32,779 nt of DNA from Octopus bimaculoides (taxonomy: Eukaryota): the NCBI RefSeq assembly GCF_001194135.2, contig NC_069001.1, positions 30,596,427 through 30,629,205 of the forward strand. Reading direction: 5' to 3'. Below the pieces are notes generated by a model. That model saw nothing but the letters and a program-made list of their open reading frames with translations. It had not been told where the DNA came from and did no database searches. Made by a program: the position numbers and the translations under genes. Shown in pieces: positions 456 to 32,779 of this stretch. How positions within the stretch are numbered: the stretch's first letter is position 1; each line of letters starts with the position of its first letter.

Positions 456-814
456 CTTGTGAATTATTTCACCTTCCACTTCAAAAGGAAAGTAGAGCTA
501 GAGAGAAAATGCCTGACTGCGAAAATGTTTGAGAGTCGATGGAAGAATGTAGCACGAAAGTTGCGAATAAATGGAACCACATGAATGAGACGAAGGACTC
601 ATATCAGTGGCGAGGCGGGGCACAAGGGGTCCGTGCTAAACCCGCCTTACCACTCCATCCGTAATGTCTTCCGGTCTGTCGCATCATCCGAGTATAATTC
701 GTTTTCATAATAAAACTTTTAAATGCATGTTTCTGTGAATTCATTCGTTTTCATCTGACCCCAAATCAGGTTGCATCGTTCCCTTTATGTCGCCCCTTGT
801 GGGTAATAAAAAAA
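456..814 (+). mobile_element. 3' end (ORF2 C-terminus + 3'UTR) of a diverged Tx1/L1-clade LINE
   Basis: 456-584 encodes LVNYFTFHFKRKVELERKCLTAKMFESRWKNVARKLRINGTT*. This aligns by eye with the ORF2 C-terminus at 31323-31455 (LVNFFSYHVGSKIRLVERRRLPRDMIVKRWKTVVHKLGMSDTR*). It is followed by about 230 bp of UTR ending gccccttgtgggtaataaaaaaa. Confidence 0.75.
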
Positions 815-979
815 TTCTTCGTCGTTTCTTGTTTATGTAAATTTCAACTATATAATAACGAAGGCAGCTATACGCTATATAAAATCAAAAAGGAAAATGT
901 CATTCTCACTAATTGTGACTGACGTTACTAGGTAACACATTAGCTTTCTTCCAAAGAATCTAGTGCTTTTAGCTTATAT

Positions 980-2871: not shown

Positions 2872-4033
2872 TTATATTTATCTAGTATGTGGGAATGTAT
2901 TTAAATAAGTAAATTATATACATATATATTACACACAACGACATCCACACGCACACATGCATCTATATATAAATATAAGCGTATGCACAGATGTCCGCCT
3001 CTATGTAAGTTTATGGCTTCTTAGTGTCTGTGTGCACGTCTATGTGTTTGTGTGCATGTGTATGTATGTGTGTGTATGTGCGTGTACTTTGATGTGGGTG
3101 CGAATGAGTTGTTCTGATTTACTTAAATCTACCTGCAGTATAGTTTTTAACTTATCCTAACTTATTCGTTAGATTTGTCTGACTTATCAAATTTATTTAG
3201 ATTTAGTTTTAGTTTTGGCTTAAGTTTCTAGCGAAAGCGCTCTAAGCAATTTCTGAGAGAAGTGCTGACTAAAAGAAAGAAGGAAAAAATCTGAACACCA
3301 CAGAACATGCGAAAGAGTTTTAAAACTTAATATTCTATTATAACGTTTAATTATTTATACTTAGGTACAAATAATATATACTCTATTTTTTTTAAATTTC
3401 ATATAGAAATAAATTTGTATATATTTGTGTTTATAGTTTTATATAATCGCATGTTTTATAGAATATTTTGTGCGATGGATTAAAATGGGCTTTCAATATA
3501 GATTCATCGGTCCCTGCTGCTCTGAGATCAAGTCCAACCTTCTATAATTTGTTTCGTTCATATTCAAAATGTTAAGGTAATTATTAGAAAATATATTATA
3601 AATTTTGTTAATCATATAGAACGTATTTCACGTGAAATTTCAGAGGTCTGTATTAAAGGTTAGTAGTGATCTTTGGAGATTGCATGAGGCTAAGGATTTT
3701 GCAAATCAATTTTTCACAATATAAAGTGAAATGTTAATTAGTTAAAAAGGAATTGATAAAATATATAATACTGAAATCTTATTGTGGGCGCTATATTGGT
3801 GGAATGTTGAGGGTTAACGAATTAAGGTTTATATCATATAGATATATAGATGTATATATATAGATATATAAAGTAAACAGAAAATCTTTTTAAGAATTTA
3901 TCAAGTAGTGAGCGTGAAAAAATCTCATAATGGAAAAATCCATCATTTATTCCCTATAAATATATTTATTTATATAAGGGCATTGCTACACATAAATGTC
4001 TCACGCTAAGAGGGATTCTGAAGCCAAACTACC

Positions 4034-4176: not shown

Positions 4177-4414
4177 GGTCACTGCCTGAATAATAATAAT
4201 AATGATGATAATACTAATACTAATAATAATAATAACAATGAAATATACCTTCGGAATGAGAGAACCCAGGTTCGAAATTTCTCCAAAGTACCTGATGAAG
4301 ACTGGAGGGTATAGCAGCCGAAACGTTGTCTTAACAACGAACAAGATGAGGACAAATATCCGTCAAATGTAAATAATGTACATAATTCCTCATGTCATAA
4401 ATATAGAACTGTAA
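4177..4414 (+). mobile_element. Dispersed repeat with hammerhead-like core (Penelope pLTR-like / retrozyme-like)
   Basis: Closely homologous to 27011-27274: shared ggtcactgcc, gaacccaggttcga, ctgatgaag...cagccgaaa, aacaagatgaggacaaatatccgtcaaatgtaaataat. Confidence 0.75.
4286..4332 (+). ncRNA. Minimal type I hammerhead ribozyme-like motif
   Basis: CTGATGA at 4292-4298; stem II gactg/cagcc (ggctg/cagcc in the second copy); GAAA at 4320-4323; palindromic AACGTT stem III with GUU triplet; stem I aag(t)ac/gtctt. Confidence 0.6.
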
Positions 4415-7412: not shown

Positions 7413-7752
7413 GCTGGCAGAATCGTAAAGCACGCCAGACAAAATGTGTAGCGGCATTTCGACCGTCCTTACGTTCTAAGCTGAAATTCCGCTGAGGTCG
7501 ACATTTCCTTTCATCTTTCCGGGGTCGATAGTATAAGATGCATTTGATTAATGGGGCAAATGTAATCGACTTTCACTCTCTTCCGAAATTGCTGACTTTC
7601 TGACAAAATTTGAAACCACTATTGATGTCATTGTGAAGGCGGATCCGTAAAGCACACCTGGCAAAATGCTTAGAGGCCTTTCGTCTATCTTTACGTTCTG
7701 AGTTGAAATTCTGCTTAATTATTGGCCTTGTGCAAAAAATTGAAATCAATTC
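7413..7752 (+). mobile_element. Two degenerate SINE family 1 copies (7413-7572, 7636-7752)
   Basis: gctggcagaatcgtaaagcacgcc...gaggtcgacatttcctttcatctttccggggtcgat. The second copy ends ggccttgtgcaaaaaatttgaaatcaatt (tail type 2). Confidence 0.75.
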
Positions 7753-8989: not shown

Positions 8990-9369
8990 TTGTACTCAAC
9001 CGGTGCTTCTTTTATGAAAGAATGAAAGACAAAGTCGACTTTGGTGGGATTATAGTGTAGAACGTAAAAAGCGGAAGGAATGACGGCAATCCTTTTGCCC
9101 GGGTTGCTAATGACTCCATCAGTTCGTCGCCTTACGAGTAACATTAACATTGATTTTAAATGTGGCACAAGGACAGGAGATTCGGAGAGAGAGAGAGAGA
9201 AGTCAGTTAAATCGACCTCACTGCTTAACACGTACTTATTTTATCGACTCCGAAAGGATAAAAGTCAAAGTCGATCTCGGTGCAATTTGAACTGAGAGCA
9301 TAAAGACAGACGGAATGCCGCAAAACATTTCGCCCGGCGTACTATCGATTTTGTTAGGTCGTTGCCTTA
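8990..9369 (-). mobile_element. Two degenerate SINE family 1 copies (8990-9134, 9201-9369)
   Basis: Plus strand shows the reverse-complement core (aaagtcgactttggtgg; ttatcgactccgaaaggataaaagtcaaagtcgatctcgg) and head ends gcctta. Confidence 0.75.
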
Positions 9370-10007: not shown

Positions 10008-11254
10008 TTGGGCAGTGGACAAGTAGAATTATTAGAGTAGAGAATGATACAGTTTGCAGTAATCCTTCATTTAAAACGCGGTATAGCCAGTACTTGAATT
10101 CGATTCCATGTATAGACTGATATAAATTCGACAACTTTTTTTTTTATTTGTGTTTACATCACTTCTATATATTCTGCAGTATCAGCAATAGTATCTATCG
10201 CGGCTCTATGTCTATATAATAAATAGATTCTATTTCTTATCATCTTACTCTATGGAAAGGAATGAAAAAAGCATAGAAATCACCGAAACATACATTTCCT
10301 TAGAAATTATAAGCGATTAGGTTGACCACATCACTTGGCTTGTGTTTATTTTATGAATTTAAGCAAGAACTACGACAAAAGAGCTATGGCTTGGATTTCA
10401 AAGAGAATTCAACGTTCTACTCTTAAATTATTTACGGTATGATGCAGCGTGTTCTACGAATACCACGGATTGTATTAGGTCAACTGAGTTATGGATAAAT
10501 GTCACAAGTACTATGCTGGTACTTGGAATTAATATGTAAATGAACACAACAAAATACGTCGATTACCGGTTGTTTGCATCAGAATTCAGTGCATATTTTT
10601 AAATATCTATCTCAGCCCGTCGATGCATCCACCTGCCTTCCTCCTCTCTCTCTTCTATCTCTCTCTCTACATACCTACCTACCTATCTATCTACTCATCT
10701 ATCGATCTATATATCCATCTGCCTAGACATCTATCCGTATATCTTTTATTTTCATATATCTATCTAGCTCTCTTTCTATCAGACGAAATATCTAATCATA
10801 TATGTCCATTCTCCTGTCTATACGGTAAACATTAAAATCTAATCGACAACAGAAGCATCTATCATCTTATATATTATTTCCATAACTAGTTATTTTATGT
10901 ATTATGCTTCACATTGATGTCAGACTCACATAAATAATTCCATAGATTGAACAACGGCCATGCACTTTTAGATATTGATGGTACGGATTCCTAATATAAT
11001 AAGTACAAGTTTACATATTTGCAGAAATGGAATAATATATCAATGTGACTTAAAGCTTAAAGTTTCGAAAGTAAATATCATAATGTATAATTGTTTCACA
11101 CCACACCGTTCTTGCTTACGGCCACATCATGCTGATTCCACTGGTTCTCGTCTGGTTTACCGAAGTCAAGATAAGTCGAACCTACTTAGTATTTATATGG
11201 GTGATCACTGCAAGCATCTCACAAGGTGGAGAGCTGGCAGAATGGTAAGCAGCA

Positions 11255-11480
11255 GAGCTGGCAGAATCGTTAGCGTGCCGGGTGAAATGCTTTGCGGTAT
11301 TTCGTCTGCCGCCGCGTTCTGAGTTCAAGTTCCGCCGAGGTCGACTTTGCCTTTCATCCTTTCAGGGTCGATTTAAATAAGTACCAGTTACGCACTGAGG
11401 TCAATATAATCGACTTAATCCGTTTGTATGTCCTTGTTTGTCCCCTCTATGTTTAGCCCCTTGTGGGTAGTAAAGAAATA
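11255..11480 (+). mobile_element. Young SINE family 1 (tail type 1) nested in a SINE head, 16-bp TSD
   Basis: Perfect direct repeat agaatggtaagcagca at 11239-11254 and 11481-11496 flanks a near full-length copy ending gccccttgtgggtagtaaagaaata. Confidence 0.92.
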
Positions 11481-11533
11481 AGAATGGTAAGCAGCATTTC
11501 CTCCGTTTTTAGTTTGTTGGTTCAAATGCCACC

Positions 11534-11622
11534 GGGGTCGACTTTGCCTTTCATCCCTTCGGGGTCGACTTTGCCTTTCATCCCTTCGGGGTCGACTTTG
11601 CCTTTCATCCCTTCGGGGTCGA
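11534..11622 (+). repeat. Perfect 27-bp tandem triplication of the SINE core
   Basis: ggggtcgactttgcctttcatcccttc at 11534, 11561 and 11588, plus a partial ggggtcga at 11615. Confidence 0.95.
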
Positions 11623-11648
11623 TAAAATAAGTACCCCTCGAGGACTGA

Positions 11649-13239: not shown

Positions 13240-13412
13240 AGCGAAATGTTTAGCGGTATTTCCTCTGCCCTATGTTCTGAGTTCAAATTCCAGCGAGGTC
13301 GACTTTGCCTTTCATTATTTCGAGTTCGATAAATTAAGTGCCAGTTGCGTGCTGGAGTCGATCTAATCGACTAGTTCCCTCTCAAGAATTTTCGGGCCTT
13401 GTGCCTAGCGTG
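13240..13412 (+). mobile_element. SINE family 1 copy with tail type 2
   Basis: gcgaaatgtttagcggtatttc...gaggtcgactttgcctttca...aattttcgggccttgtgcctagcgtggaaaa. Confidence 0.85.
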
Positions 13413-21519: not shown

Positions 21520-21952
21520 TTAAGGTGGTGAACCGGCAGAATCATTAGCACGATGATCAAAATGCTTAGCGGTATTTCGTCTGCCGCTACGTTCTGAGTT
21601 GAAATTCCGCCGAGGTCGACTTTGCCTTTCCTCCTTTTGGGGTCGGTTAAATAAGTACCAGTTACGTACTGGGGGTCGATATAATCGACTTAATCCGTCC
21701 TTGTTTGTCCCCTCTGTGTGTATCCCGCTGTGGGCAGTAAAAAAATAAGAATCATTAGCACGCTGATCAAAATGTTTAGCGGTATTTCCCCTGTCTGCAT
21801 GTTCTGGATTTGAATTCTGCCGGTGTCTATTTTGTCTTTTATCATTTTGGAGGTCGATAAATTCTCTACCAGTTGAACATTGGAGTCTATGTAATCAACT
21901 AATACTCTCACTCCAAATTCGTGGCGTTGAACCAAAACTTGAAAATAATATT
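21520..21952 (+). mobile_element. Old SINE family 1 host (tail type 2) containing a younger tail-type-1 SINE (21565-21747)
   Basis: 27-bp duplication agaatcattagcacg(a/c)tgatcaaaatg at 21538-21564 and 21748-21774. The insert has a near-consensus body and the tail gtttgtcccctctgtgtgtatcccgctgtgggcagtaaaaaaata. Confidence 0.85.
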
Positions 21953-23430: not shown

Positions 23431-24268
23431 AATATATATATATATATGTGCGTCTGTGTGTACAAGAATATTTCCCATATTGTGAAATTATCATTTATTT
23501 TAACATCTGTTTTACTTTCAGACAATTTTATTTTTCTTCTCACATTCCCAAATTTGCAGCGAGCGTATATGAATTATTGTTGTTTCTTTTACTTTCTTTC
23601 TATTATTTCACATTCTAATAATATTATTTGTCTATATTTACAAAGTTTCAATAGATTCATTTAACGGTTATTTACGTGTATTCATTTTCTTTTGTGGAAA
23701 TGTTCTTGCCTTTTGTTTCAACAATTCATCTGAGATTAATTTTCTAAGATTTTTAATATTCTATACAGTCACATGCTCTCAATTCTTAAATTCTTATTTC
23801 GACTTGGTGGTACACAAAAAGAAGCATGTGCTATAAGTAATACATACATTTATATAGAAGTGAATACGTGTTTTAGGTGTGGTGGAATGTAGGATGCATT
23901 TATGTATTTATTTGAATGCTGTTATAGTTCTCCGTTACTGAAATGAAACCCTCCATGGTAACGATCTGAAAAGTCAAGTCTCCAGTGAAGTAAGCACACA
24001 TTCTACTCGCAGATACCAGAGGAGTGAAAGAAGATAACACAGTCAACACTGCCATGGACAATTGTAATTCTGTACTGAGCGATGTTTCTCATACGTTTAT
24101 ATGCAAACAAAATACATATGTGTGTACATATGTACACAGAGTAAACAAGACTATTTCGAAAATGGAAGCTAACATCTTTCTCCATGTTGTCGGCTTGAAA
24201 AATTGCATTAACACACACATACATACTTATATATATATATACACACACACACACAATTATCTACATAT

Positions 24269-24671
24269 ATGCGTATAAGAAAGAATGACCACTAGGTGGA
24301 CATCCAATATGCTAGAAAGAGATCATCAATGACCCAACCACAAAAGAAAAATCATGTTCTCCAGAAAAAATTCAGCAACAACATCAGAGTTTAGGCGGGC
24401 AGGACACGGTCGTCTCGGCGTTTCTTCGCCGCTTCGGTCGTCCGGCGTGCCGAGTCGTCGGCTGGCCGGTTTGGCGTCGAGGTGTCGCGCGCGTTTTTGA
24501 CGATAAAAATTTTCATTTTCATATTTTTTTCATTTGGTCCTGCCCGCCTAAGCTCTGGTGTTTTTGCTGAATTTTTTCTGGAGAACATTTTTTCTTCTGT
24601 GGTTGGGTTATTGATGACCTCTTTCTAGTATATTGGATGTCCACCTAGTGGTCATCCCTTCTTATACGCAT
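24269..24671. mobile_element. MITE/fold-back element with about 135-bp TIRs and a CpG-rich spacer
   Basis: Arms 24269-24405 and 24537-24671 are imperfect reverse complements (atgcgtataagaa...gaccactaggtggacatccaata...ttaggcgggcaggac). Confidence 0.9.
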
Positions 24672-24764
24672 GTAATACAATTTTTCTGAATTATCAGATT
24701 TTTTAGATGCTAGACCACTGGTTTTGAATTGAAATTAACATTCAATTTATCACCCTCAGTATAA

Positions 24765-27010: not shown

Positions 27011-27274
27011 GGTCACTGCCAGGAATCGAACTCAGAATCTTGGGGTTAATAGCCCGCGCTCTTAACCACTACACCATAATAATAACATCGAAAAAGAACC
27101 TTAAGAATGAGAACACAGGTTCGATATTTTCCCAAGAAACCTGATGAAGGATAGGCTGGGTATATCAGCCGAAATGTTTTGTCAACAACAAACAAGATGA
27201 GGACAAATATCCGTCAAATGTAAATAATATAAATAATGTACATAATTCCTCATCTCATAAATACAGTACTGTAA
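27011..27274 (+). mobile_element. Composite repeat: antisense tRNA-like head (27011-27078) joined to a hammerhead-bearing segment
   Basis: Minus strand tggtgtagtggtt (A-box-like) and gttcgattcc (B-box-like). Plus strand CTGATGA at 27141-47, ggctg/cagcc stem, GAAA at 27171-74. Homologous to 4177-4414. Confidence 0.75.
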
Positions 27275-27730
27275 ACTAAATTTGCTTGAAATTTTAAGGT
27301 GTTTCAATTATTTTGTCCAACTCCTGTCTCTGTGTGTGTGTATGTGTGCGTGCATGTGTATGAAGTCTATATATACACATATATATACACATATATTGTG
27401 CTGTGTGGTAAGTAAATATACACAAGTTGCTCGAACTCTACACACCATGTGCTAGAGGGTTCCAAACTGATTTTTATCGGCGCCAAGAGGGCTTTCTCGT
27501 GACGTCGAAGACATTAGTGGTATTAGGGGACTATTGTTGACGCACGCATCGATAGTGTTGGCTCGATCAGTAGGAAAGTAAACTCACGTCTCATAGATCT
27601 GGTTAAGCGTTTTCAGTTGGCGGATCGTTATAGACTTGACTATCCGAACGTCCCAGAGTGGACCTGGATGAGTGGCGACGGATGGTTCAAGTCTTATTTA
27701 AATAAATTAGTGATAAATATTAGAGACAAG

Positions 27731-28295
27731 GGATCTTTTTTAAAACGGGGGCCACATTTTTCATTAATGTTTTACGTAGTGTTTTTGGTACCGAAAGAAT
27801 TTCAAACTTCGTATACTTATCTATTTTGTGTTATAGAACAGAAAAATATTTTTGTATTCGAATTTATTTCATGTAAAAAATTGTCTTATTTCGATAATTT
27901 CAACCAATCACTGACGTCCATTCAGCCGATATACATTAAGTGCCGACTACATAAACAAACGATTCTTCGTTTTATTTGCTTTTTTCATTTTAAATTTGCT
28001 TTAACCGTAACCCTAACCCTAACCCTAACCCTAGGGTTAGGGTTAGGGTTAGGGTTAATTGCTTCAGAATCGTTTGTTTATGTAGTCGGCGCTTAATGTA
28101 TATCGGCTGAATGGACGTCAGTGATTGGTTGAAATTACAGAAATACGACAACTTTAACATGGAATAATTTATGGATTTCTTTTTTTTTAAGAAGACTAAG
28201 AGAAAAAGATGTTTTATATGACACATTCTACCAGTGTTCCAAGTTTCAAAGTGTTTCGTTAATGAAAAATGTGGCCCCCGTTTTAAAAAAGATCC
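27731..28295. mobile_element. 565-bp palindromic MITE, perfect 37-bp TIR, 8-bp TSD GAGACAAG (Merlin- or hAT-like)
   Basis: TIR ggatcttttttaaaacgggggccacatttttcattaa at 27731-27767 and its reverse complement at 28259-28295. TSD at 27723-27730 and 28296-28303. Inner arms 27895-27966 / 28066-28137 have 1 mismatch. Confidence 0.95.
28002..28058. repeat. Inverted telomeric repeat (TAACCC)4-5 / (GGGTTA)4 at the MITE centre
   Basis: Directly visible; symmetric about cccta|ggg at 28032/28033. Confidence 0.95.
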
Positions 28296-28652
28296 GAGAC
28301 AAGTCTAGTTTTAGTTGTCCACAGCTTATCCAGGTGTCCTACACTGACCATAGAATAGTTAAGTGTAGACTGTATATAGATAGTACACTTAAGAAAGGAC
28401 CCGGCTACTGGAAGCTGAACAAGTCTATTTTGACATGTGAGGCATACCGTATCCGGATTAGGGAGTTATTACAGATGGCGTTAACCGGTGGTGGTTCGCC
28501 CTCAAAAGAGCCATTGGTTTCGAGTCCATTAGGTTTAGCAAACAGCTAAGACTAGATAGGGCTAGAATAGAAGGGATAAGTTAAGGATTTAGAGAAGGCC
28601 TTGAGGTTGGGCTCTGCATCTCACATTCTGGTGGCGAGAAAGGTATTGGACC

Positions 28653-29149
28653 GTGTGGGAAAGCTGAACTTCGACCGTGAGGGCTTTGTTATTTGAACTG
28701 TTGCCCTCATTAAGAGGAGAAAAAAACACAATATAGGTTTCCCGTTTTGAGGGATTAATTTATGCTGTAGAATTTATTTATTTTTGAACTGTTATCCTCG
28801 TTAAGAGGAAAAAAACACATACAGGTTTCCCGTCTTTAATGTGTTCTGTGCTGTGTGGGAAAGCTGAACTTCGGCCGTGTGGGCTTTGTTATTTGAGCTG
28901 TTGTCCTCATTAAGGGGATAAAAAACACAATATAGGTTTCCCGTTTTGAGTGATTAATTTATACTGTAGGGTTTATTTATTTTTGAACTGTTATCCTCGT
29001 TAAAAGGAAAAAAACACTGCATAGGTTTCCCATCTTTGACGTGTTCTGTGCTGTGTAGGAAGACGAAACTTCAGCCGTTGTAGGCTTTATTGTTTGAAAT
29101 ATTGTCCTCATTATGAGGGGGAAAAAGTGATTATAGGTTTCCCGTTTTG
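28653..29149 (+). repeat. About 2.5 copies of a 200-bp tandem unit built from about 91 + 109-bp related subunits
   Basis: Units start gtgtggga/gtgtagga at 28653, 28853 and 29053. Each contains two gaactgtt-cctc-ttaa...aggtttccc motifs (28695, 28786). Confidence 0.9.
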
Positions 29150-29176
29150 GAAAAGTAAGCTCGTTACAGGCTCTAC

Positions 29177-31679
29177 TACTTAGCTGTCCACAGCTCGTCC
29201 AAGTAGCTTACACTGACCATAGAATGATCAAGTGTACACTGGACGCAGATAGTACAGTTAAGAGAGGATCCGGTTATTCGAAGATGAACAAGTCTAGTTT
29301 GACTTGCGGGATCTTACCGTAGCCGGATTAAGGGATTAGTACAGAGGGTGTTAACCGTCGCTGTGGTTAATAACCGATGGTGGTTCGCTGTGAAGAGTGC
29401 CATTAGTTTTGAGTCTATTAGGTTTAGCCGTCAGCTAAGACTAAATGGGGCAAGAATAGAAGGGAAACTAGTTAAGGACATAGAGGGAGCGTTGAGGTTG
29501 GGCTCTGCATCTCACATTTTGGCAGCGAGAAGGGCCTTGGACCGTCACCTCAAAGCCAATCACGAGGGGTGCAGAGTTCAGAGCTAAAGTGCACGCATTG
29601 GGCCGTGACGGAATTAATGTTGCCGGATCGGCCCGTGCGGTAAAAAGCCAGGGTGGCAATGATGCCATAATTAGGTCTTTCGTCGACGAAAACGGACGTT
29701 AGGTCGAAGGACCGGACAAGATGTGTGAAGCGCTTTACACGCACTTTGCCGAGTTGTTCGGGAGGGGCGCGACGCTGGATCATGGTGAGGCCCTTAGTGA
29801 CTTCCTGTCTCTCANNNNNNNNNNNNNNNNNNNNNNNNNNNNNNNNNNNNNNNNNNNNNNNNNNNNNNNNNNNNNNNNNNNNNNNNNNNNNNNNNNNNNN
29901 NNNNNNNNNNNNNNNNNNNNNNNNNNNNNNNNNNNNNNNNNNNNNNNNNNNNNNNNNNNNNNNNNNNNNNNNNNNNNNNNNNNNNNNNNNNNNNNNNNNN
30001 NNNNNNNNNNNNNNNNNNNNNNNNNNNNNNNNNNNNNNNNNNNNNNNNNNNNNNNNNNNNNNNNNNNNNNNNNNNNNNNNNNAGCTTGTCGGGGAAGCGC
30101 AAACTTGCGCCATCCCGGGCAGGTCGATCCACGACAATCTGCACCTTATACACTATTTCTTAGAAAGGGGTTGGAAACTTTCTGGCGCAGGGGGAGGACT
30201 GGTGCATTTAGACCAGTCTAAAGCATTTGATAGGGTCGACCATCGGTACTTAACGGCGGTCCTCGAGGAGGCTGACCTGGACCCGACCTTACACGGTTGG
30301 ATCGCTGCTTTGTATAGCGACATCGAGTCTGTCGTCAAGGTGAACGGTTTCTTTTCGAAACCAAATAGGATCGAGCGTTCAGTTCGTCAGCGATGTCTCC
30401 TGTCTGCGCTTCTGTATCTGTTGGCTCTTGGGTCATTGCTGCGGAAGTTGGAGGCACTAGGGGGTGTACCACATGATCTATAGTGTGGAAGAGGAGCTAC
30501 AGCTTATGCGGATGACATCTCCGTCATCGTGGCTGATGAGGGTCAGCTTCCTGCCGTGAAAGAGGCCATCAAAAGGAGCAAAATTAACAGGGATAAGTCA
30601 CTCGGTTTGCAACTCGGCACTTGGAGGGGCAAGCAGATGACGTCCAATAACGTCGTGGGACGTTGGACGGAAAGCCCTGTTTAGTTGCTAGGAGTCTGGT
30701 TTGGTTTAGACCTTCAGATAGAGAAAAGTTGGAGTGAGGTACCCAGCAGGGTGACTGTTCTAACCCAGACTTGGTCTGGGCGGGCGTTATCCTTGCTAGG
30801 AAGGGCGGAGGTGGACGACCAATGTTGGCAACAGGACTTCTACCACGGATTTCTATAGCGGGTTCGTGGAGTTTATGTCTGAAGGCGCCTTTTGGGGAGA
30901 CCCTAGGCTACGATGAAAATCAGTTGGTCAACCTGTTCGGGCCGGGGTATCTGGATAATTACCAGAAATCCCTAGCCTCGCAGTGTTTCCGTGCGGTGTT
31001 ACCTGTTCATGATAACTTATCAAGGCACGGGAGTGCCGTCTTGCCGACATGCCCACGATGTAAGCAGGGTAGGGAAACCGTCGTGCACAAATTCGTGGAG
31101 TGTCCGGAGTTATCGGGACTGATAGCTTTCGTCGAACAACTACTGTCAGTGATGGGAAGAGTAAAGCTATCAGCTGAGTCTATCATCGAGATTGTGCTGC
31201 CTCCTTCCCTCAACAGAGAAAGGAAGGCTTGTTTTTCCTGCATAGTAGCCATACTGAAAGAGACAGTATGGTAGACGCGTATGAAACGTATTGTGACAGG
31301 CAACTTCGTCTCCGGCCAGAGATTGGTCAACTTTTTTTAGTTATCACGTCGGTAGTAAGATTAGGCTGGTGGAGAGGAGACGTCTGCCACGTGATATGAT
31401 TGTAAAAAGGTGGAAGACGGTAGTGCACAAGCTGGGTATGAGTGACACCAGGTAGGTGAGGCCGAGTTTGGAAGTAAAACTTCTACCCGGATGGCTGGAA
31501 GTCTGTCCTTTAAATCGGATTTTTATATATTTTTAAACGTAATAAAATTGATCATGTATAAACTCATCCGAATTTTCACGTGTAATTTCCAATCGTAAAG
31601 CTACTTCACCGTCTATGTTTGTCTGTCCTGTTTTGTCCCCTCTCTGTAAATGCCTAAATGGCAAATTTCTTGAAATAAA
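29177..31679 (+). mobile_element. Tx1/L1-clade LINE copy B: disrupted ORF2 (EN end, RT, zinc-binding region) and 3'UTR
   Basis: AYTDHRMIKC; GRSIHDNL...LDQSKAFDRVDHRYL...VRQRCLLSALLY; YADD at 30505-30516; CPRCKQGRETVVHKFVEC; stop at 31453-55; tail ending gaaataaag. Multiple stops and frameshifts, one N gap. Confidence 0.93.
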
Positions 31680-32779
31680 GTATCTCGCTTCCGAGCCTGC
31701 GTCGGTCTATTCGCTGCATTGATTTTTAACAAGACGGACAGAATTTTATGAGCTGCTTGGCAGCGGTTTGTCGGTGAGTGTTGTACGGGTGGAAACGAAT
31801 GTATTCGGACCTTAGCGAGTGTGAGCTGTCCTCATCGGAGGAGGATTTCGTCAAGGCAGCAAATAGAATGGATGAGCATTTGAAAAGAGTAAAGAGTTTT
31901 GATGAAGCTGCAGAGACGAAGAAAACGGAAGTGGACCTAATTGAACTGAAGGAGCTGTGTAAGATGACACAGAAGGTGGGTGGTGATGTAAAGTTATTAC
32001 CCCTGAAAAGGGTTATGCAAAAAAAAAGACCATCACCTACAAGGTGTATGCAGTGGAGAAAAGGAAGGTGGAGCGGATCGGGATGGAAATAGTAGAAAAA
32101 GCTCAGAAGGGGCTTTCGAAGGAAGTGACGTATATAGCCAAACGAAATGGACATGGGACGGTGGTTGTCCAGTTTAGGACAGCGGAGGAGACGAAGAAGC
32201 TGGTGAGCACAACTGTAAAAACGGAAGAACTAATACTTCTACCCACGTACCTTGGAAGAAAGACTTCTATGGTGAGGGTAGAAGGAATTCCGCCGCATAT
32301 AGAAGTGGCTTGGGTAGCGGCAGCCGTCCTCGCTGGAAGTGAGGAGGCGGTGGAGGTCCTCCAAGCCACAGAGACGGAGGAAGGAGGATTTAAAGGGAAA
32401 AAAATTAGAAATTATCATAGATGCAGAGGCGAACCTGCTAGAAAATTTGGCGGAGATGGTGAGGTTGGGAGAAATAGTATTGAGAGTATGAGTAGAGGGC
32501 AGAGCACCACTTTGTTTTAGATGTGGCCAAAAGGGCCACATTAGAGCATACTGCCCTCTACAAAGGACAATGGCTGAGGATGCATTGTGGAGATGGAGGG
32601 GAAGAGAGAGGGAGAAAAGACAGAAGAAGGAAAGGAGAAAAAGGAGAAAGAATGGAAAGCTACAGAGAACAGAAGGAGTAAGAGGAAAACAAAGAAAAGA
32701 CACTGAGTATGATGTGGTACCCCAGTTCAATTTCATCCCACCCAAGACCACTCAGATTCACCTTCCCCATACAGACACC
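31680..32779 (+). mobile_element. Tx1-like LINE copy C: 5' region and frameshifted ORF1 (gag-like, CCHC knuckle), truncated by window end
   Basis: Overlapping ORF pieces 31778-32092 and 32044-32520, then VEGRAPL-CFRCGQKGHIRAYC (CX2CX4HX4C at 32513-32554), followed by a Lys/Arg/Glu-rich region. Confidence 0.85.

Follow-up and report, generated by a model that had tools for sequence, protein, structure and literature searches.

A SINE 3′ module homologous to the 3′ end of Tx1-like LINEs in octopods: a candidate SINE/LINE partnership

The borrowing of tails from long interspersed elements (LINEs) by short interspersed elements (SINEs) has been a classical principle since the 1990s (review PMC3747384). 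In the eel pair UnaSINE1/UnaL2, SINE and LINE have a common 3′ tail with a stem-loop and no poly(A), reverse transcription is believed to start at a specific 3′ end, and tail recognition accounts for the mobilization of the SINE in trans (Kajikawa and Okada 2002, cited in PMC3747384). In crocodilians, a Tx1-clade LINE, Tx1-Mar, has been proposed as the mobilizer of SINEU (Kojima 2015, PMC4494074). In plants and algae, LINEs of the L1 superfamily, usually deemed “relaxed” users of poly(A), share a specific 3′ end and a compensatory hairpin with SINEs, as seen for ZmSINE2/3 and monocot L1 in maize and sorghum and for SINEX-3_CR and L1-1_CR in Chlamydomonas (Ohshima 2012/2013, PMC3472496, PMC3747384). 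Here we describe a candidate pair of this kind in a 32.8-kb stretch of DNA (hereafter, the window), in which a SINE subfamily carries a 3′ module homologous to the end of the 3′ untranslated region (UTR) of Tx1-like LINEs.

In octopus genomes, no class of repeats is larger than the SINEs, and a SINE burst has been tied to octopod genome evolution. The octopus SINE families OK, OR1, and OR2 were reportedly described by Ohshima and Okada in 1994. In genome papers, octopus SINEs are called “tRNA-Core / tRNA-Deu / unclassified” (PMC8967140, PMC13282606); nearly every octopus SINE family, among them 893 recently active ones, is listed as unclassified, with no partner LINE named (PMC13282606), and a 2013 survey of 58 SINE/LINE pairs includes neither an octopus pair nor a Tx1 pair. 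Compared by description, the SINEs analyzed here and all of these octopus SINEs, being octopod, abundant, and equipped with a conserved core, probably represent the same or related families. Our literature search, which did not extend to Repbase Reports, to the 1994 paper on octopus SINEs, or to the octopus genome paper of 2015, found no description of an octopus SINE/Tx1 tail pair, and SINEU was the sole Tx1–SINE link that it returned (PMC4494074).

The window, a draft sequence from a eukaryote, is interrupted by seven runs of N and is dense in microsatellites and short interspersed repeats. The closest proteins to its LINE remnants are cephalopod, from Argonauta hians, Octopus sinensis, and metagenome or read-archive contigs. 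By these similarities, its genome is that of an octopod, probably of an Octopus species.

Homologous and co-terminal tails of SINEs and LINEs

Three SINE copies in the window, at 1197–1426 on the minus strand (SINE1), 11255–11480 (SINE2), and 21522–21747 (SINE3), share a tail of ~60 nucleotides (nt), and two LINE copies, LINE A at 456–815 and LINE B at about 27424–31682, carry it as well. A profile of the tail (nhmmer) found exactly five matches in the window, three in the SINEs and two in the LINEs (772–815 in LINE A, E = 6e-10; 31625–31680 in LINE B, E = 4e-7). An earlier note on this DNA had proposed the relationship on the basis of two partial matches, and all of the sequences that it quoted were recovered at their positions. 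The first match, 781–814 against 11442–11480, contains a common block of 14 bases, gccccttgtgggta, and was returned by BLAST as 778–815 against 11440–11479 with 82.5% identity over 40 bases. The second, 31617–31643 against 1227–1253 on the minus strand, agreed at 24 of 27 positions; BLAST aligned 31617–31647 with both 1221–1251 and 11422–11452 at 87% over 31 bases. Judged by sequence comparison, these two matches are the halves of one homologous tail of ~60 nt.

In a test for chance similarity, the whole LINE 3′UTR was aligned to the whole SINE and the score was compared with those of 1000 dinucleotide-preserving shuffles. LINE A gave z = 7.8–11.4 against the SINEs, and LINE B gave z = 10.2 against SINE1/SINE2, with none of the 1000 shuffles as good in either case. 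When LINE copies from outside the window (L004, L007, and L076) were considered along with LINE A and LINE B, z against SINE1 and SINE2 ranged from 7 to 19, again unequaled in 1000 shuffles. The strong alignments were co-terminal, with the 3′ end of the LINE lying on the 3′ end of the SINE, except for that of LINE B, in which only the upstream half scored; eleven LINE and SINE tails in all could be aligned co-terminally. Over the last 40 nt, LINE A (82.5%), L004, and L076 were 80–85% identical to SINE2, which equals the identity among the SINEs themselves (82.5–85%). SINE and LINE termini were also alike, reading ...AATAAAGAA(A)T(A) and ending in ...AATAAAGAAAT, without poly(A); the three SINE copies finished in ...CCTTGTGGG(C/T)A(A/G)TAAAGAA(A)TA, likewise with no poly(A). 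Together, these results show that the SINE and LINE tails are homologous and co-terminal, beyond what chance would produce.

Independent LINE copies were retrieved via their ORF2 (open reading frame 2) C-termini. The comparison of tails covered those loci whose LINE 3′ terminus could be delimited, leaving out L003, L005, L009, and L010, in which the contig ends before that terminus, and the cuttlefish relative L077, whose 3′ end is undelimited. The tail occurred at the same co-terminal position, after the end of ORF2 and a UTR, in seven LINE 3′ ends from several species or samples. The loci with the tail behind an ORF2 C-terminus lay on an O. sinensis chromosome (L004, with the end ...tgtccccctctatgtttgggcccttgtggctaataaagaaat and z = 18.6 against SINE2), in read-archive or metagenome contigs (L007/L008, L001, and L011), and in A. 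hians (L076, with a near-full-length ORF2, the end ...gtcccctctatgtttttgcccttgtggctaataaaagaaata, and z = 13.8). In L001, L004, and L076, the ORF2 C-terminus before the tail was intact or near-intact. The tail is found in two LINE lineages whose ORF2 C-termini are only 45–52% identical.

We consider it quite probable that the SINE, with its 3′ module homologous to the 3′UTR end of a Tx1-like LINE, forms a classical “stringent” SINE/LINE partnership with that element. In such a partnership, the LINE ORF2 protein (ORF2p) would recognize the terminal ~30–60 nt of its own RNA, including a small stem-loop before ...AATAAAGAAAT; target-primed reverse transcription would begin at ...GAAAT and not on poly(A); and SINE RNA with the same tail would be accepted in trans. 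Tail-specific priming in trans would be expected to leave a common terminus and duplications of 13–17 bp, and the target-site duplications found measure 13 and 16 bp at the SINEs and 17 bp at LINE A. The proposal of the earlier note that a LINE mobilizes this SINE thus gains support from the presence of the tail in independent LINE copies and from the placement of the reverse transcriptase (RT) in the L1 superfamily (see below), while ORF2p binding, mobilization in trans, the direction of capture, and Tx1 membership are all elements that we infer.

Modularity of the SINEs and rival explanations of the shared tail

The tail-bearing SINE subfamily is composed of three modules: a head with RNA polymerase III (Pol III) box-like motifs, a core, and the 3′ module of ~60 nt. 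SINE1, a full-length copy, has its tail at 1197–1262 and is bounded by a perfect 13-bp duplication (1184–1196 and 1427–1439). SINE2, on the plus strand, has its tail at 11415–11480 and lies within the head of an older SINE, between perfect 16-bp duplicates of agaatggtaagcagca (11239–11254 and 11481–11496). SINE3, also on the plus strand, directly precedes a further SINE, which starts at agaatcatt and has another type of tail. The core (ggtcgactttgcctttcatcctttcggggtcgat...) is common to nine SINE copies in the window and to one Argonauta SINE family. At least five other SINE relatives in the window have the same head and core but switch to a different tail immediately after “aatcgact,” and the tail is therefore a swappable, subfamily-defining module. 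A second tail type (ctctc..cgaaatt...ttgaaa...) stands directly after “aatcgact” in these sister subfamilies and was located in the window at 21748–21935, 9164–9368 (minus strand), 13241–13405, and 7413–7580, and in O. sinensis at 3237–3400 of L004.

Two attributes that the earlier note had given to the SINE gained no support. It had called the SINE young, and the three copies were only 80–87% identical in pairwise comparison (masked self-BLAST). It had also called it tRNA-derived, and neither ARAGORN nor Rfam detected a tRNA. The box A-like motif, tggcagaatcg, and the box B-like motif, gagttcaaattcc, were recognized by eye only; a tRNA origin of the head would fit the octopus SINE literature and is taken here as an assumption.

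Among the rival explanations, the one that survives best, and that we nevertheless regard as unlikely, is that the tail is a relic, left from former use of this LINE or from mere recombination with it, and that what amplifies or amplified the SINE is another abundant octopus LINE (RTE-BovB, CR1, or Dong-R4) or an A-rich 3′ end of the relaxed kind. These three clades are the most active ones in O. vulgaris (PMC13282606, Table 1), the 3′ end is indeed A-rich (AATAAAGAAAT), and the sister SINE subfamilies in the window manage with another tail. Against this, the tail was conserved as well as the rest of the element in all three copies. It also stops at the same terminal nucleotide as the LINE tails, without poly(A), the lengths of the SINE duplications agree with that of the LINE copy, and SINE and LINE hairpins from one genome or lineage are of matching variant (see below).

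A reversed direction of transfer, in which a SINE that already existed supplied the LINE lineage with its 3′ end through a process such as template switching, appears somewhat less likely still. If this had happened, the tail would be little guide to the mobilizer. Recombination of retroelements is known, and tail-bearing SINEs far outnumber LINE copies, above all in Argonauta. Against this, the tail ends a colinear LINE UTR in both of the lineages whose ORF2 C-termini share only 45–52% identity, and it does so in two superfamilies of octopods. Its presence in these two lineages and in Argonauta suggests that the tail is old in the LINE. On the SINE side, the tail is swappable, occurs on at least three heads or bodies, and has been replaced in the sister subfamilies. 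The simplest reading would be that the SINE captured the LINE 3′ end; even a transfer in the other direction would leave a functional tail in common, which still implies common machinery.

It is very improbable that a SINE, or the 3′ fragment of one, was inserted after the LINE stop codon or UTR and that the LINE itself is free of the tail. SINEs in the window are dense and often nested, LINE A is short, and its match extends over only ~40 nt, all of which might suggest such an artefact. LINE A is a short, 5′-truncated retrocopy comprising ~42 C-terminal codons of ORF2, a stop codon, and a 3′UTR of 231 nt. Its ORF2 remnant (456–584, plus strand; ending ...LVNYFTFHFKRKVELERKCLTAKMFESRWKNVARKLRINGTT, stop codon at 582–584) matched the cephalopod ORF2 proteins P0087/P0002 in tblastn with E = 5e-9 to 8e-9, the match at 438–581 having E = 5e-9, and was 45% identical to P0001 over 40 residues. 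The 3′UTR (585–815, plus strand) finishes with the shared tail in its last ~44 nt (772–815), ending ...gccccttgtgggtaataaaaaaat without poly(A). The whole is enclosed by a target-site duplication: tcttcgtcttttcttgt at 444–460 matches 816–832 (both plus strand) at 16 of 17 positions, which none of 2000 shuffles equaled, and its last bases overlap the first bases of the LINE (microhomology). A single duplication thus encloses ORF2 remnant, UTR, and tail. LINE A, L004, and L007 align colinearly from ORF2 over the full length of the UTR up to and including the tail, and neither a SINE head nor a SINE core occurs along the way. The tail has the same position in all seven independent LINE copies from several species or samples. 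The nested-SINE artefact was ruled out on these three grounds. Since independent copies carry the tail, the UTR is colinear, and the 16/17 duplication brackets LINE A, the tail belongs to the LINE 3′UTR itself.

Finally, chance or low-complexity convergence of a T-rich stretch and an AATAAA signal, for which one might cite that single BLAST matches within the window reach only E = 0.002, has practically no weight and was excluded by the shuffle scores (z up to 19, 0/1000 dinucleotide shuffles) and by co-terminality recurring in many independent copies, the 64 loci found in metagenome contigs with the motif ATGTN{1,8}CCCTTGTGGNNARTAAA being unrelated chance loci that did not extend past the motif and had no SINE or LINE homology. 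A protein-pattern scan of the metagenome contig collection yielded no confirmed relative.

Terminal hairpin, clade of the LINE, and spread in Octopoda

Immediately 5′ of AATAAA, the tails contain a potential 4-bp hairpin. Its sequence is GCCC-CUUGU-GGGU in the window SINEs and LINE A and UGCC...GGCA in LINE B, whereas other LINEs and the SINEs of Argonauta have GGCC...GGCU or GGCC...GGCC. Counted over 11 tails, 85.7% of the cells were paired, compared with 71.7% in shuffles and 24–52% when the partner was slid. One of the pairs occurred five times as G-C, four times as C-G, and once as U-G, and it was never unpaired; the covariation score of the hairpin was 0.39 versus 0.17, a value that 0 of 500 shuffles reached. 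The C-G variant is common to the window SINEs and LINE A, and the G-C variant is common to the Argonauta SINEs and the Argonauta LINEs. The data would also accommodate an extended stem of 11 pairs, formed via CTCTATGTTT and AATAAAGA (83.9% paired). Taken as a structural prediction, the terminal hairpin is suggestive only.

The earlier note had described homologous ORF2 C-termini on both LINE ends and motifs for an endonuclease, an RT, and a zinc domain in LINE B, and both descriptions were borne out. ORF2 C-terminal tblastn matches were obtained at 438–581 in LINE A and at 30891–31425 in LINE B. The degenerate ORF2 of LINE B (27424–31455, plus strand) was delineated by tblastn with P0089, P0097, P0087, and P0002 and by the Pfam domains RVT_1 and zf-RVT. 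The RT lies at 30085–30810 (RVT_1), and zf-RVT with the C-terminus at 30888–31455 (stop codon at 31453–31455). Endonuclease remnants at 27424–27727 and 28280–28492, duplicated at 29155–29584, align to residues 104–349 of relatives of 1150 amino acids (aa) that carry the Pfam domain PF03372. Frameshifts, stop codons, an internal tandem repeat, an N gap (29815–30082), and a deletion of ~145 aa mark LINE B as an old, damaged copy. Its 3′UTR (31456–31682, plus strand) has the tail at 31612–31682, with a 3′ end whose position is uncertain; the terminal hairpin (tgcc-taaat-ggca) has diverged, and 6 nt are inserted ahead of aaataaag. A target-site duplication and a 5′ boundary of LINE B were searched for, and neither was found.

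The domain set of the LINE is thus an apurinic/apyrimidinic-type (APE) endonuclease (PF03372 in the full-length relatives), an RT, and a C-terminal CCHC zinc knuckle (zf-RVT). Among solved structures, human L1 ORF2p was the closest, with 150 bits for P0002 compared with 83 bits for R2. The same Argonauta protein, P0002, scored 219 bits against a Takifugu “Transposon TX1 ORF2,” and this Takifugu protein scored 127 bits against human L1. L1-Tx1 appears in published annotations as the L1-type LINE of octopus and is one of the families with recent activity in O. vulgaris (PMC13282606, Table 1), it is part of the coleoid repeat complement (PMC8967140), and Tx1 is among the clades of a mollusc-wide RT phylogeny (PMC10294476). 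These comparisons place the RT within rather than outside the Tx1/L1 group; membership of the LINE in the L1 superfamily appears solid on sequence grounds, and the scores together with the published labels make Tx1, as opposed to other L1 lineages, the probable assignment.

Several points weigh against the partnership as proposed. The Tx1 assignment, as opposed to other L1 lineages, is drawn from pairwise scores and from RepeatMasker and phylogeny labels published for L1-like LINEs of octopus and molluscs, and the names of cluster members gave no clade labels. The hairpin is just 4 bp long, RNAalifold returned no consensus structure in the tails, and single-sequence folds were no stabler than shuffles (z from +1.1 to −2.1). 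The terminal match is weaker in LINE B, as it is in the L001/L011 lineage, whose two copies had z values of about 4, and a second Argonauta LINE, L002, has kept only the hairpin and the AAGAAAGAAAT end, with an alignment score that was not significant. Within one genome, the sample consists of three SINE and two LINE copies, too few to judge an overlap in age or activity. ARAGORN and Rfam found neither a tRNA in the SINE nor any RNA family in the window.

In 43 kb of A. hians DNA (L002 and L076), the tail profile gave ~30 matches; this density, ~0.7 tails per kb, is far above that of the window. Most of these tails, a local variant of the one in the window, sit on SINEs that fall into two or more families differing in their heads. 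One of these families has the octopus SINE core. The Argonauta SINE tails all end in gtccttctatgttcggcccttgtggctaatagagaaatcta, and the copies of these families finish with ...ggcccttgtggctaatagagaaatcta. With ~30 tails in Argonauta on at least two SINE families, the SINE/LINE partnership seems to be old and widespread across Octopoda. A broader scenario can be offered only tentatively: a single Tx1-type tail of ~40–60 nt, stringently recognized and without poly(A), may be the common means by which several unrelated SINE heads have been amplified across Octopoda since before the Argonauta/Octopus split. An L1-superfamily (Tx1) LINE would then be a principal driver of the octopod-specific SINE expansion, which makes up roughly 8–12% of these genomes, and the L1/Tx1 group would have its first animal case of stringent 3′-end recognition.

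Target-sequence specificity is typical of many, not all, Tx1 elements. When the flanks of LINE A, L004, and L007 were compared in this respect, they were mutually unrelated. In copies of the P0001-like lineage, ...GAAAT(C/A) runs straight into (ATT)n or (ATC)n, at 2020–2105 in L001, where the repeat has 28 or more units, at 11193–11206 in L076, where it has four, and at 1333–1344 in L011. These could be 3′ repeats made by the RT or could reflect a preference for microsatellite targets, as in some Tx1 elements. On the SINE side, two of the three tail-bearing copies were inserted at the identical position in the head of another SINE (ggc^AGAAT...; 11239–11254 and 21537–21550 / 21748–21761). The target AGAAT is similar to the element's own 3′ end, AAGAAAT, and this likeness, seen in two cases only, could mean that microhomology guides priming or that tandem SINE dimers can arise in this way. 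In the older SINE, the one interrupted by SINE2, the core segment (ggggtcgactttgcctttcatcccttc) is present three times in tandem (11520–11640).

Further repeats were noted in the window. In the endonuclease region of LINE B, a perfect 37-bp inverted repeat (27731–27767 / 28259–28295) encloses ~490 bp, and a tandem repeat of 100–200 bp (28653–29149) lies between 77%-identical copies of the endonuclease end (28311–28654 / 29180–29545). On the 3′ side of LINE B, two overlapping open reading frames (104 and 158 aa; 31778–32520), with a sub-threshold Pfam hint of RRM_3 (E = 0.07), could be ORF1 of an adjoining LINE that runs off the window. A 140-bp inverted repeat (24266–24405 / 24537–24674; 91% identical, arms ~130 bp apart) and a dispersed direct repeat of ~190 bp (4226–4414 / 27076–27274; 80%) are probably other small mobile elements.

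Significance and comparison with known systems

A Tx1-like LINE as the donor of the tail would provide a testable candidate for the enzyme that drove the SINE expansion, and the tail offers a simple marker with which SINE families can be sorted by partner. The pair would also add an animal case to sequence-specific 3′-end recognition within the L1 superfamily and would bear on the question of whether stringent recognition is ancestral to L1-type elements (PMC3472496, PMC3747384). As the principle has long been established, the advance is incremental; added interest comes from the apparent reach of the pairing across Octopoda and from the hint that it may give of the enzyme behind the octopod SINE expansion.

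The octopod pair resembles UnaSINE1/UnaL2 in the common, poly(A)-free 3′ tail with its putative stem-loop, in the specific 3′ end at which reverse transcription would start, and in the way tail recognition would account for mobilization in trans. The eel partner, however, belongs to the L2 clade, ends in (TGTAA)n, and has been proven in a cell assay (PMC3747384), whereas the octopod partner is of L1/Tx1 type, ends in ...AATAAAGAAAT with a short (ATT)n on some LINE copies, and is known from sequence alone. With mammalian L1, the relaxed partner of Alu and B1, the octopod LINE has in common an APE endonuclease, an RT, a C-terminal cysteine-rich domain, and duplications of ~13–17 bp; mammalian L1 and its SINEs share poly(A) only, in contrast to the specific tail without poly(A) of the octopod pair.

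The two remaining systems come closer to the octopod pair in the kind of LINE involved. For SINEU, as for the octopod SINE, a Tx1-clade LINE is the proposed mobilizer. The crocodilian link was drawn through a shared target (Mariner-N4_AMi) and shared 5′ heads derived from U1/U2, in elements with poly(A) and small nuclear RNA heads (PMC4494074), whereas the octopod link is drawn through the 3′ tail, in elements with Pol III box-like heads and no poly(A), and no common target was seen. The plant and algal pairs are alike in joining an L1-superfamily LINE and its SINEs through a specific 3′ end; they end in poly(A), whereas the octopod pair is an animal one, from cephalopods, with a Tx1-like LINE and a tail that ends without poly(A).

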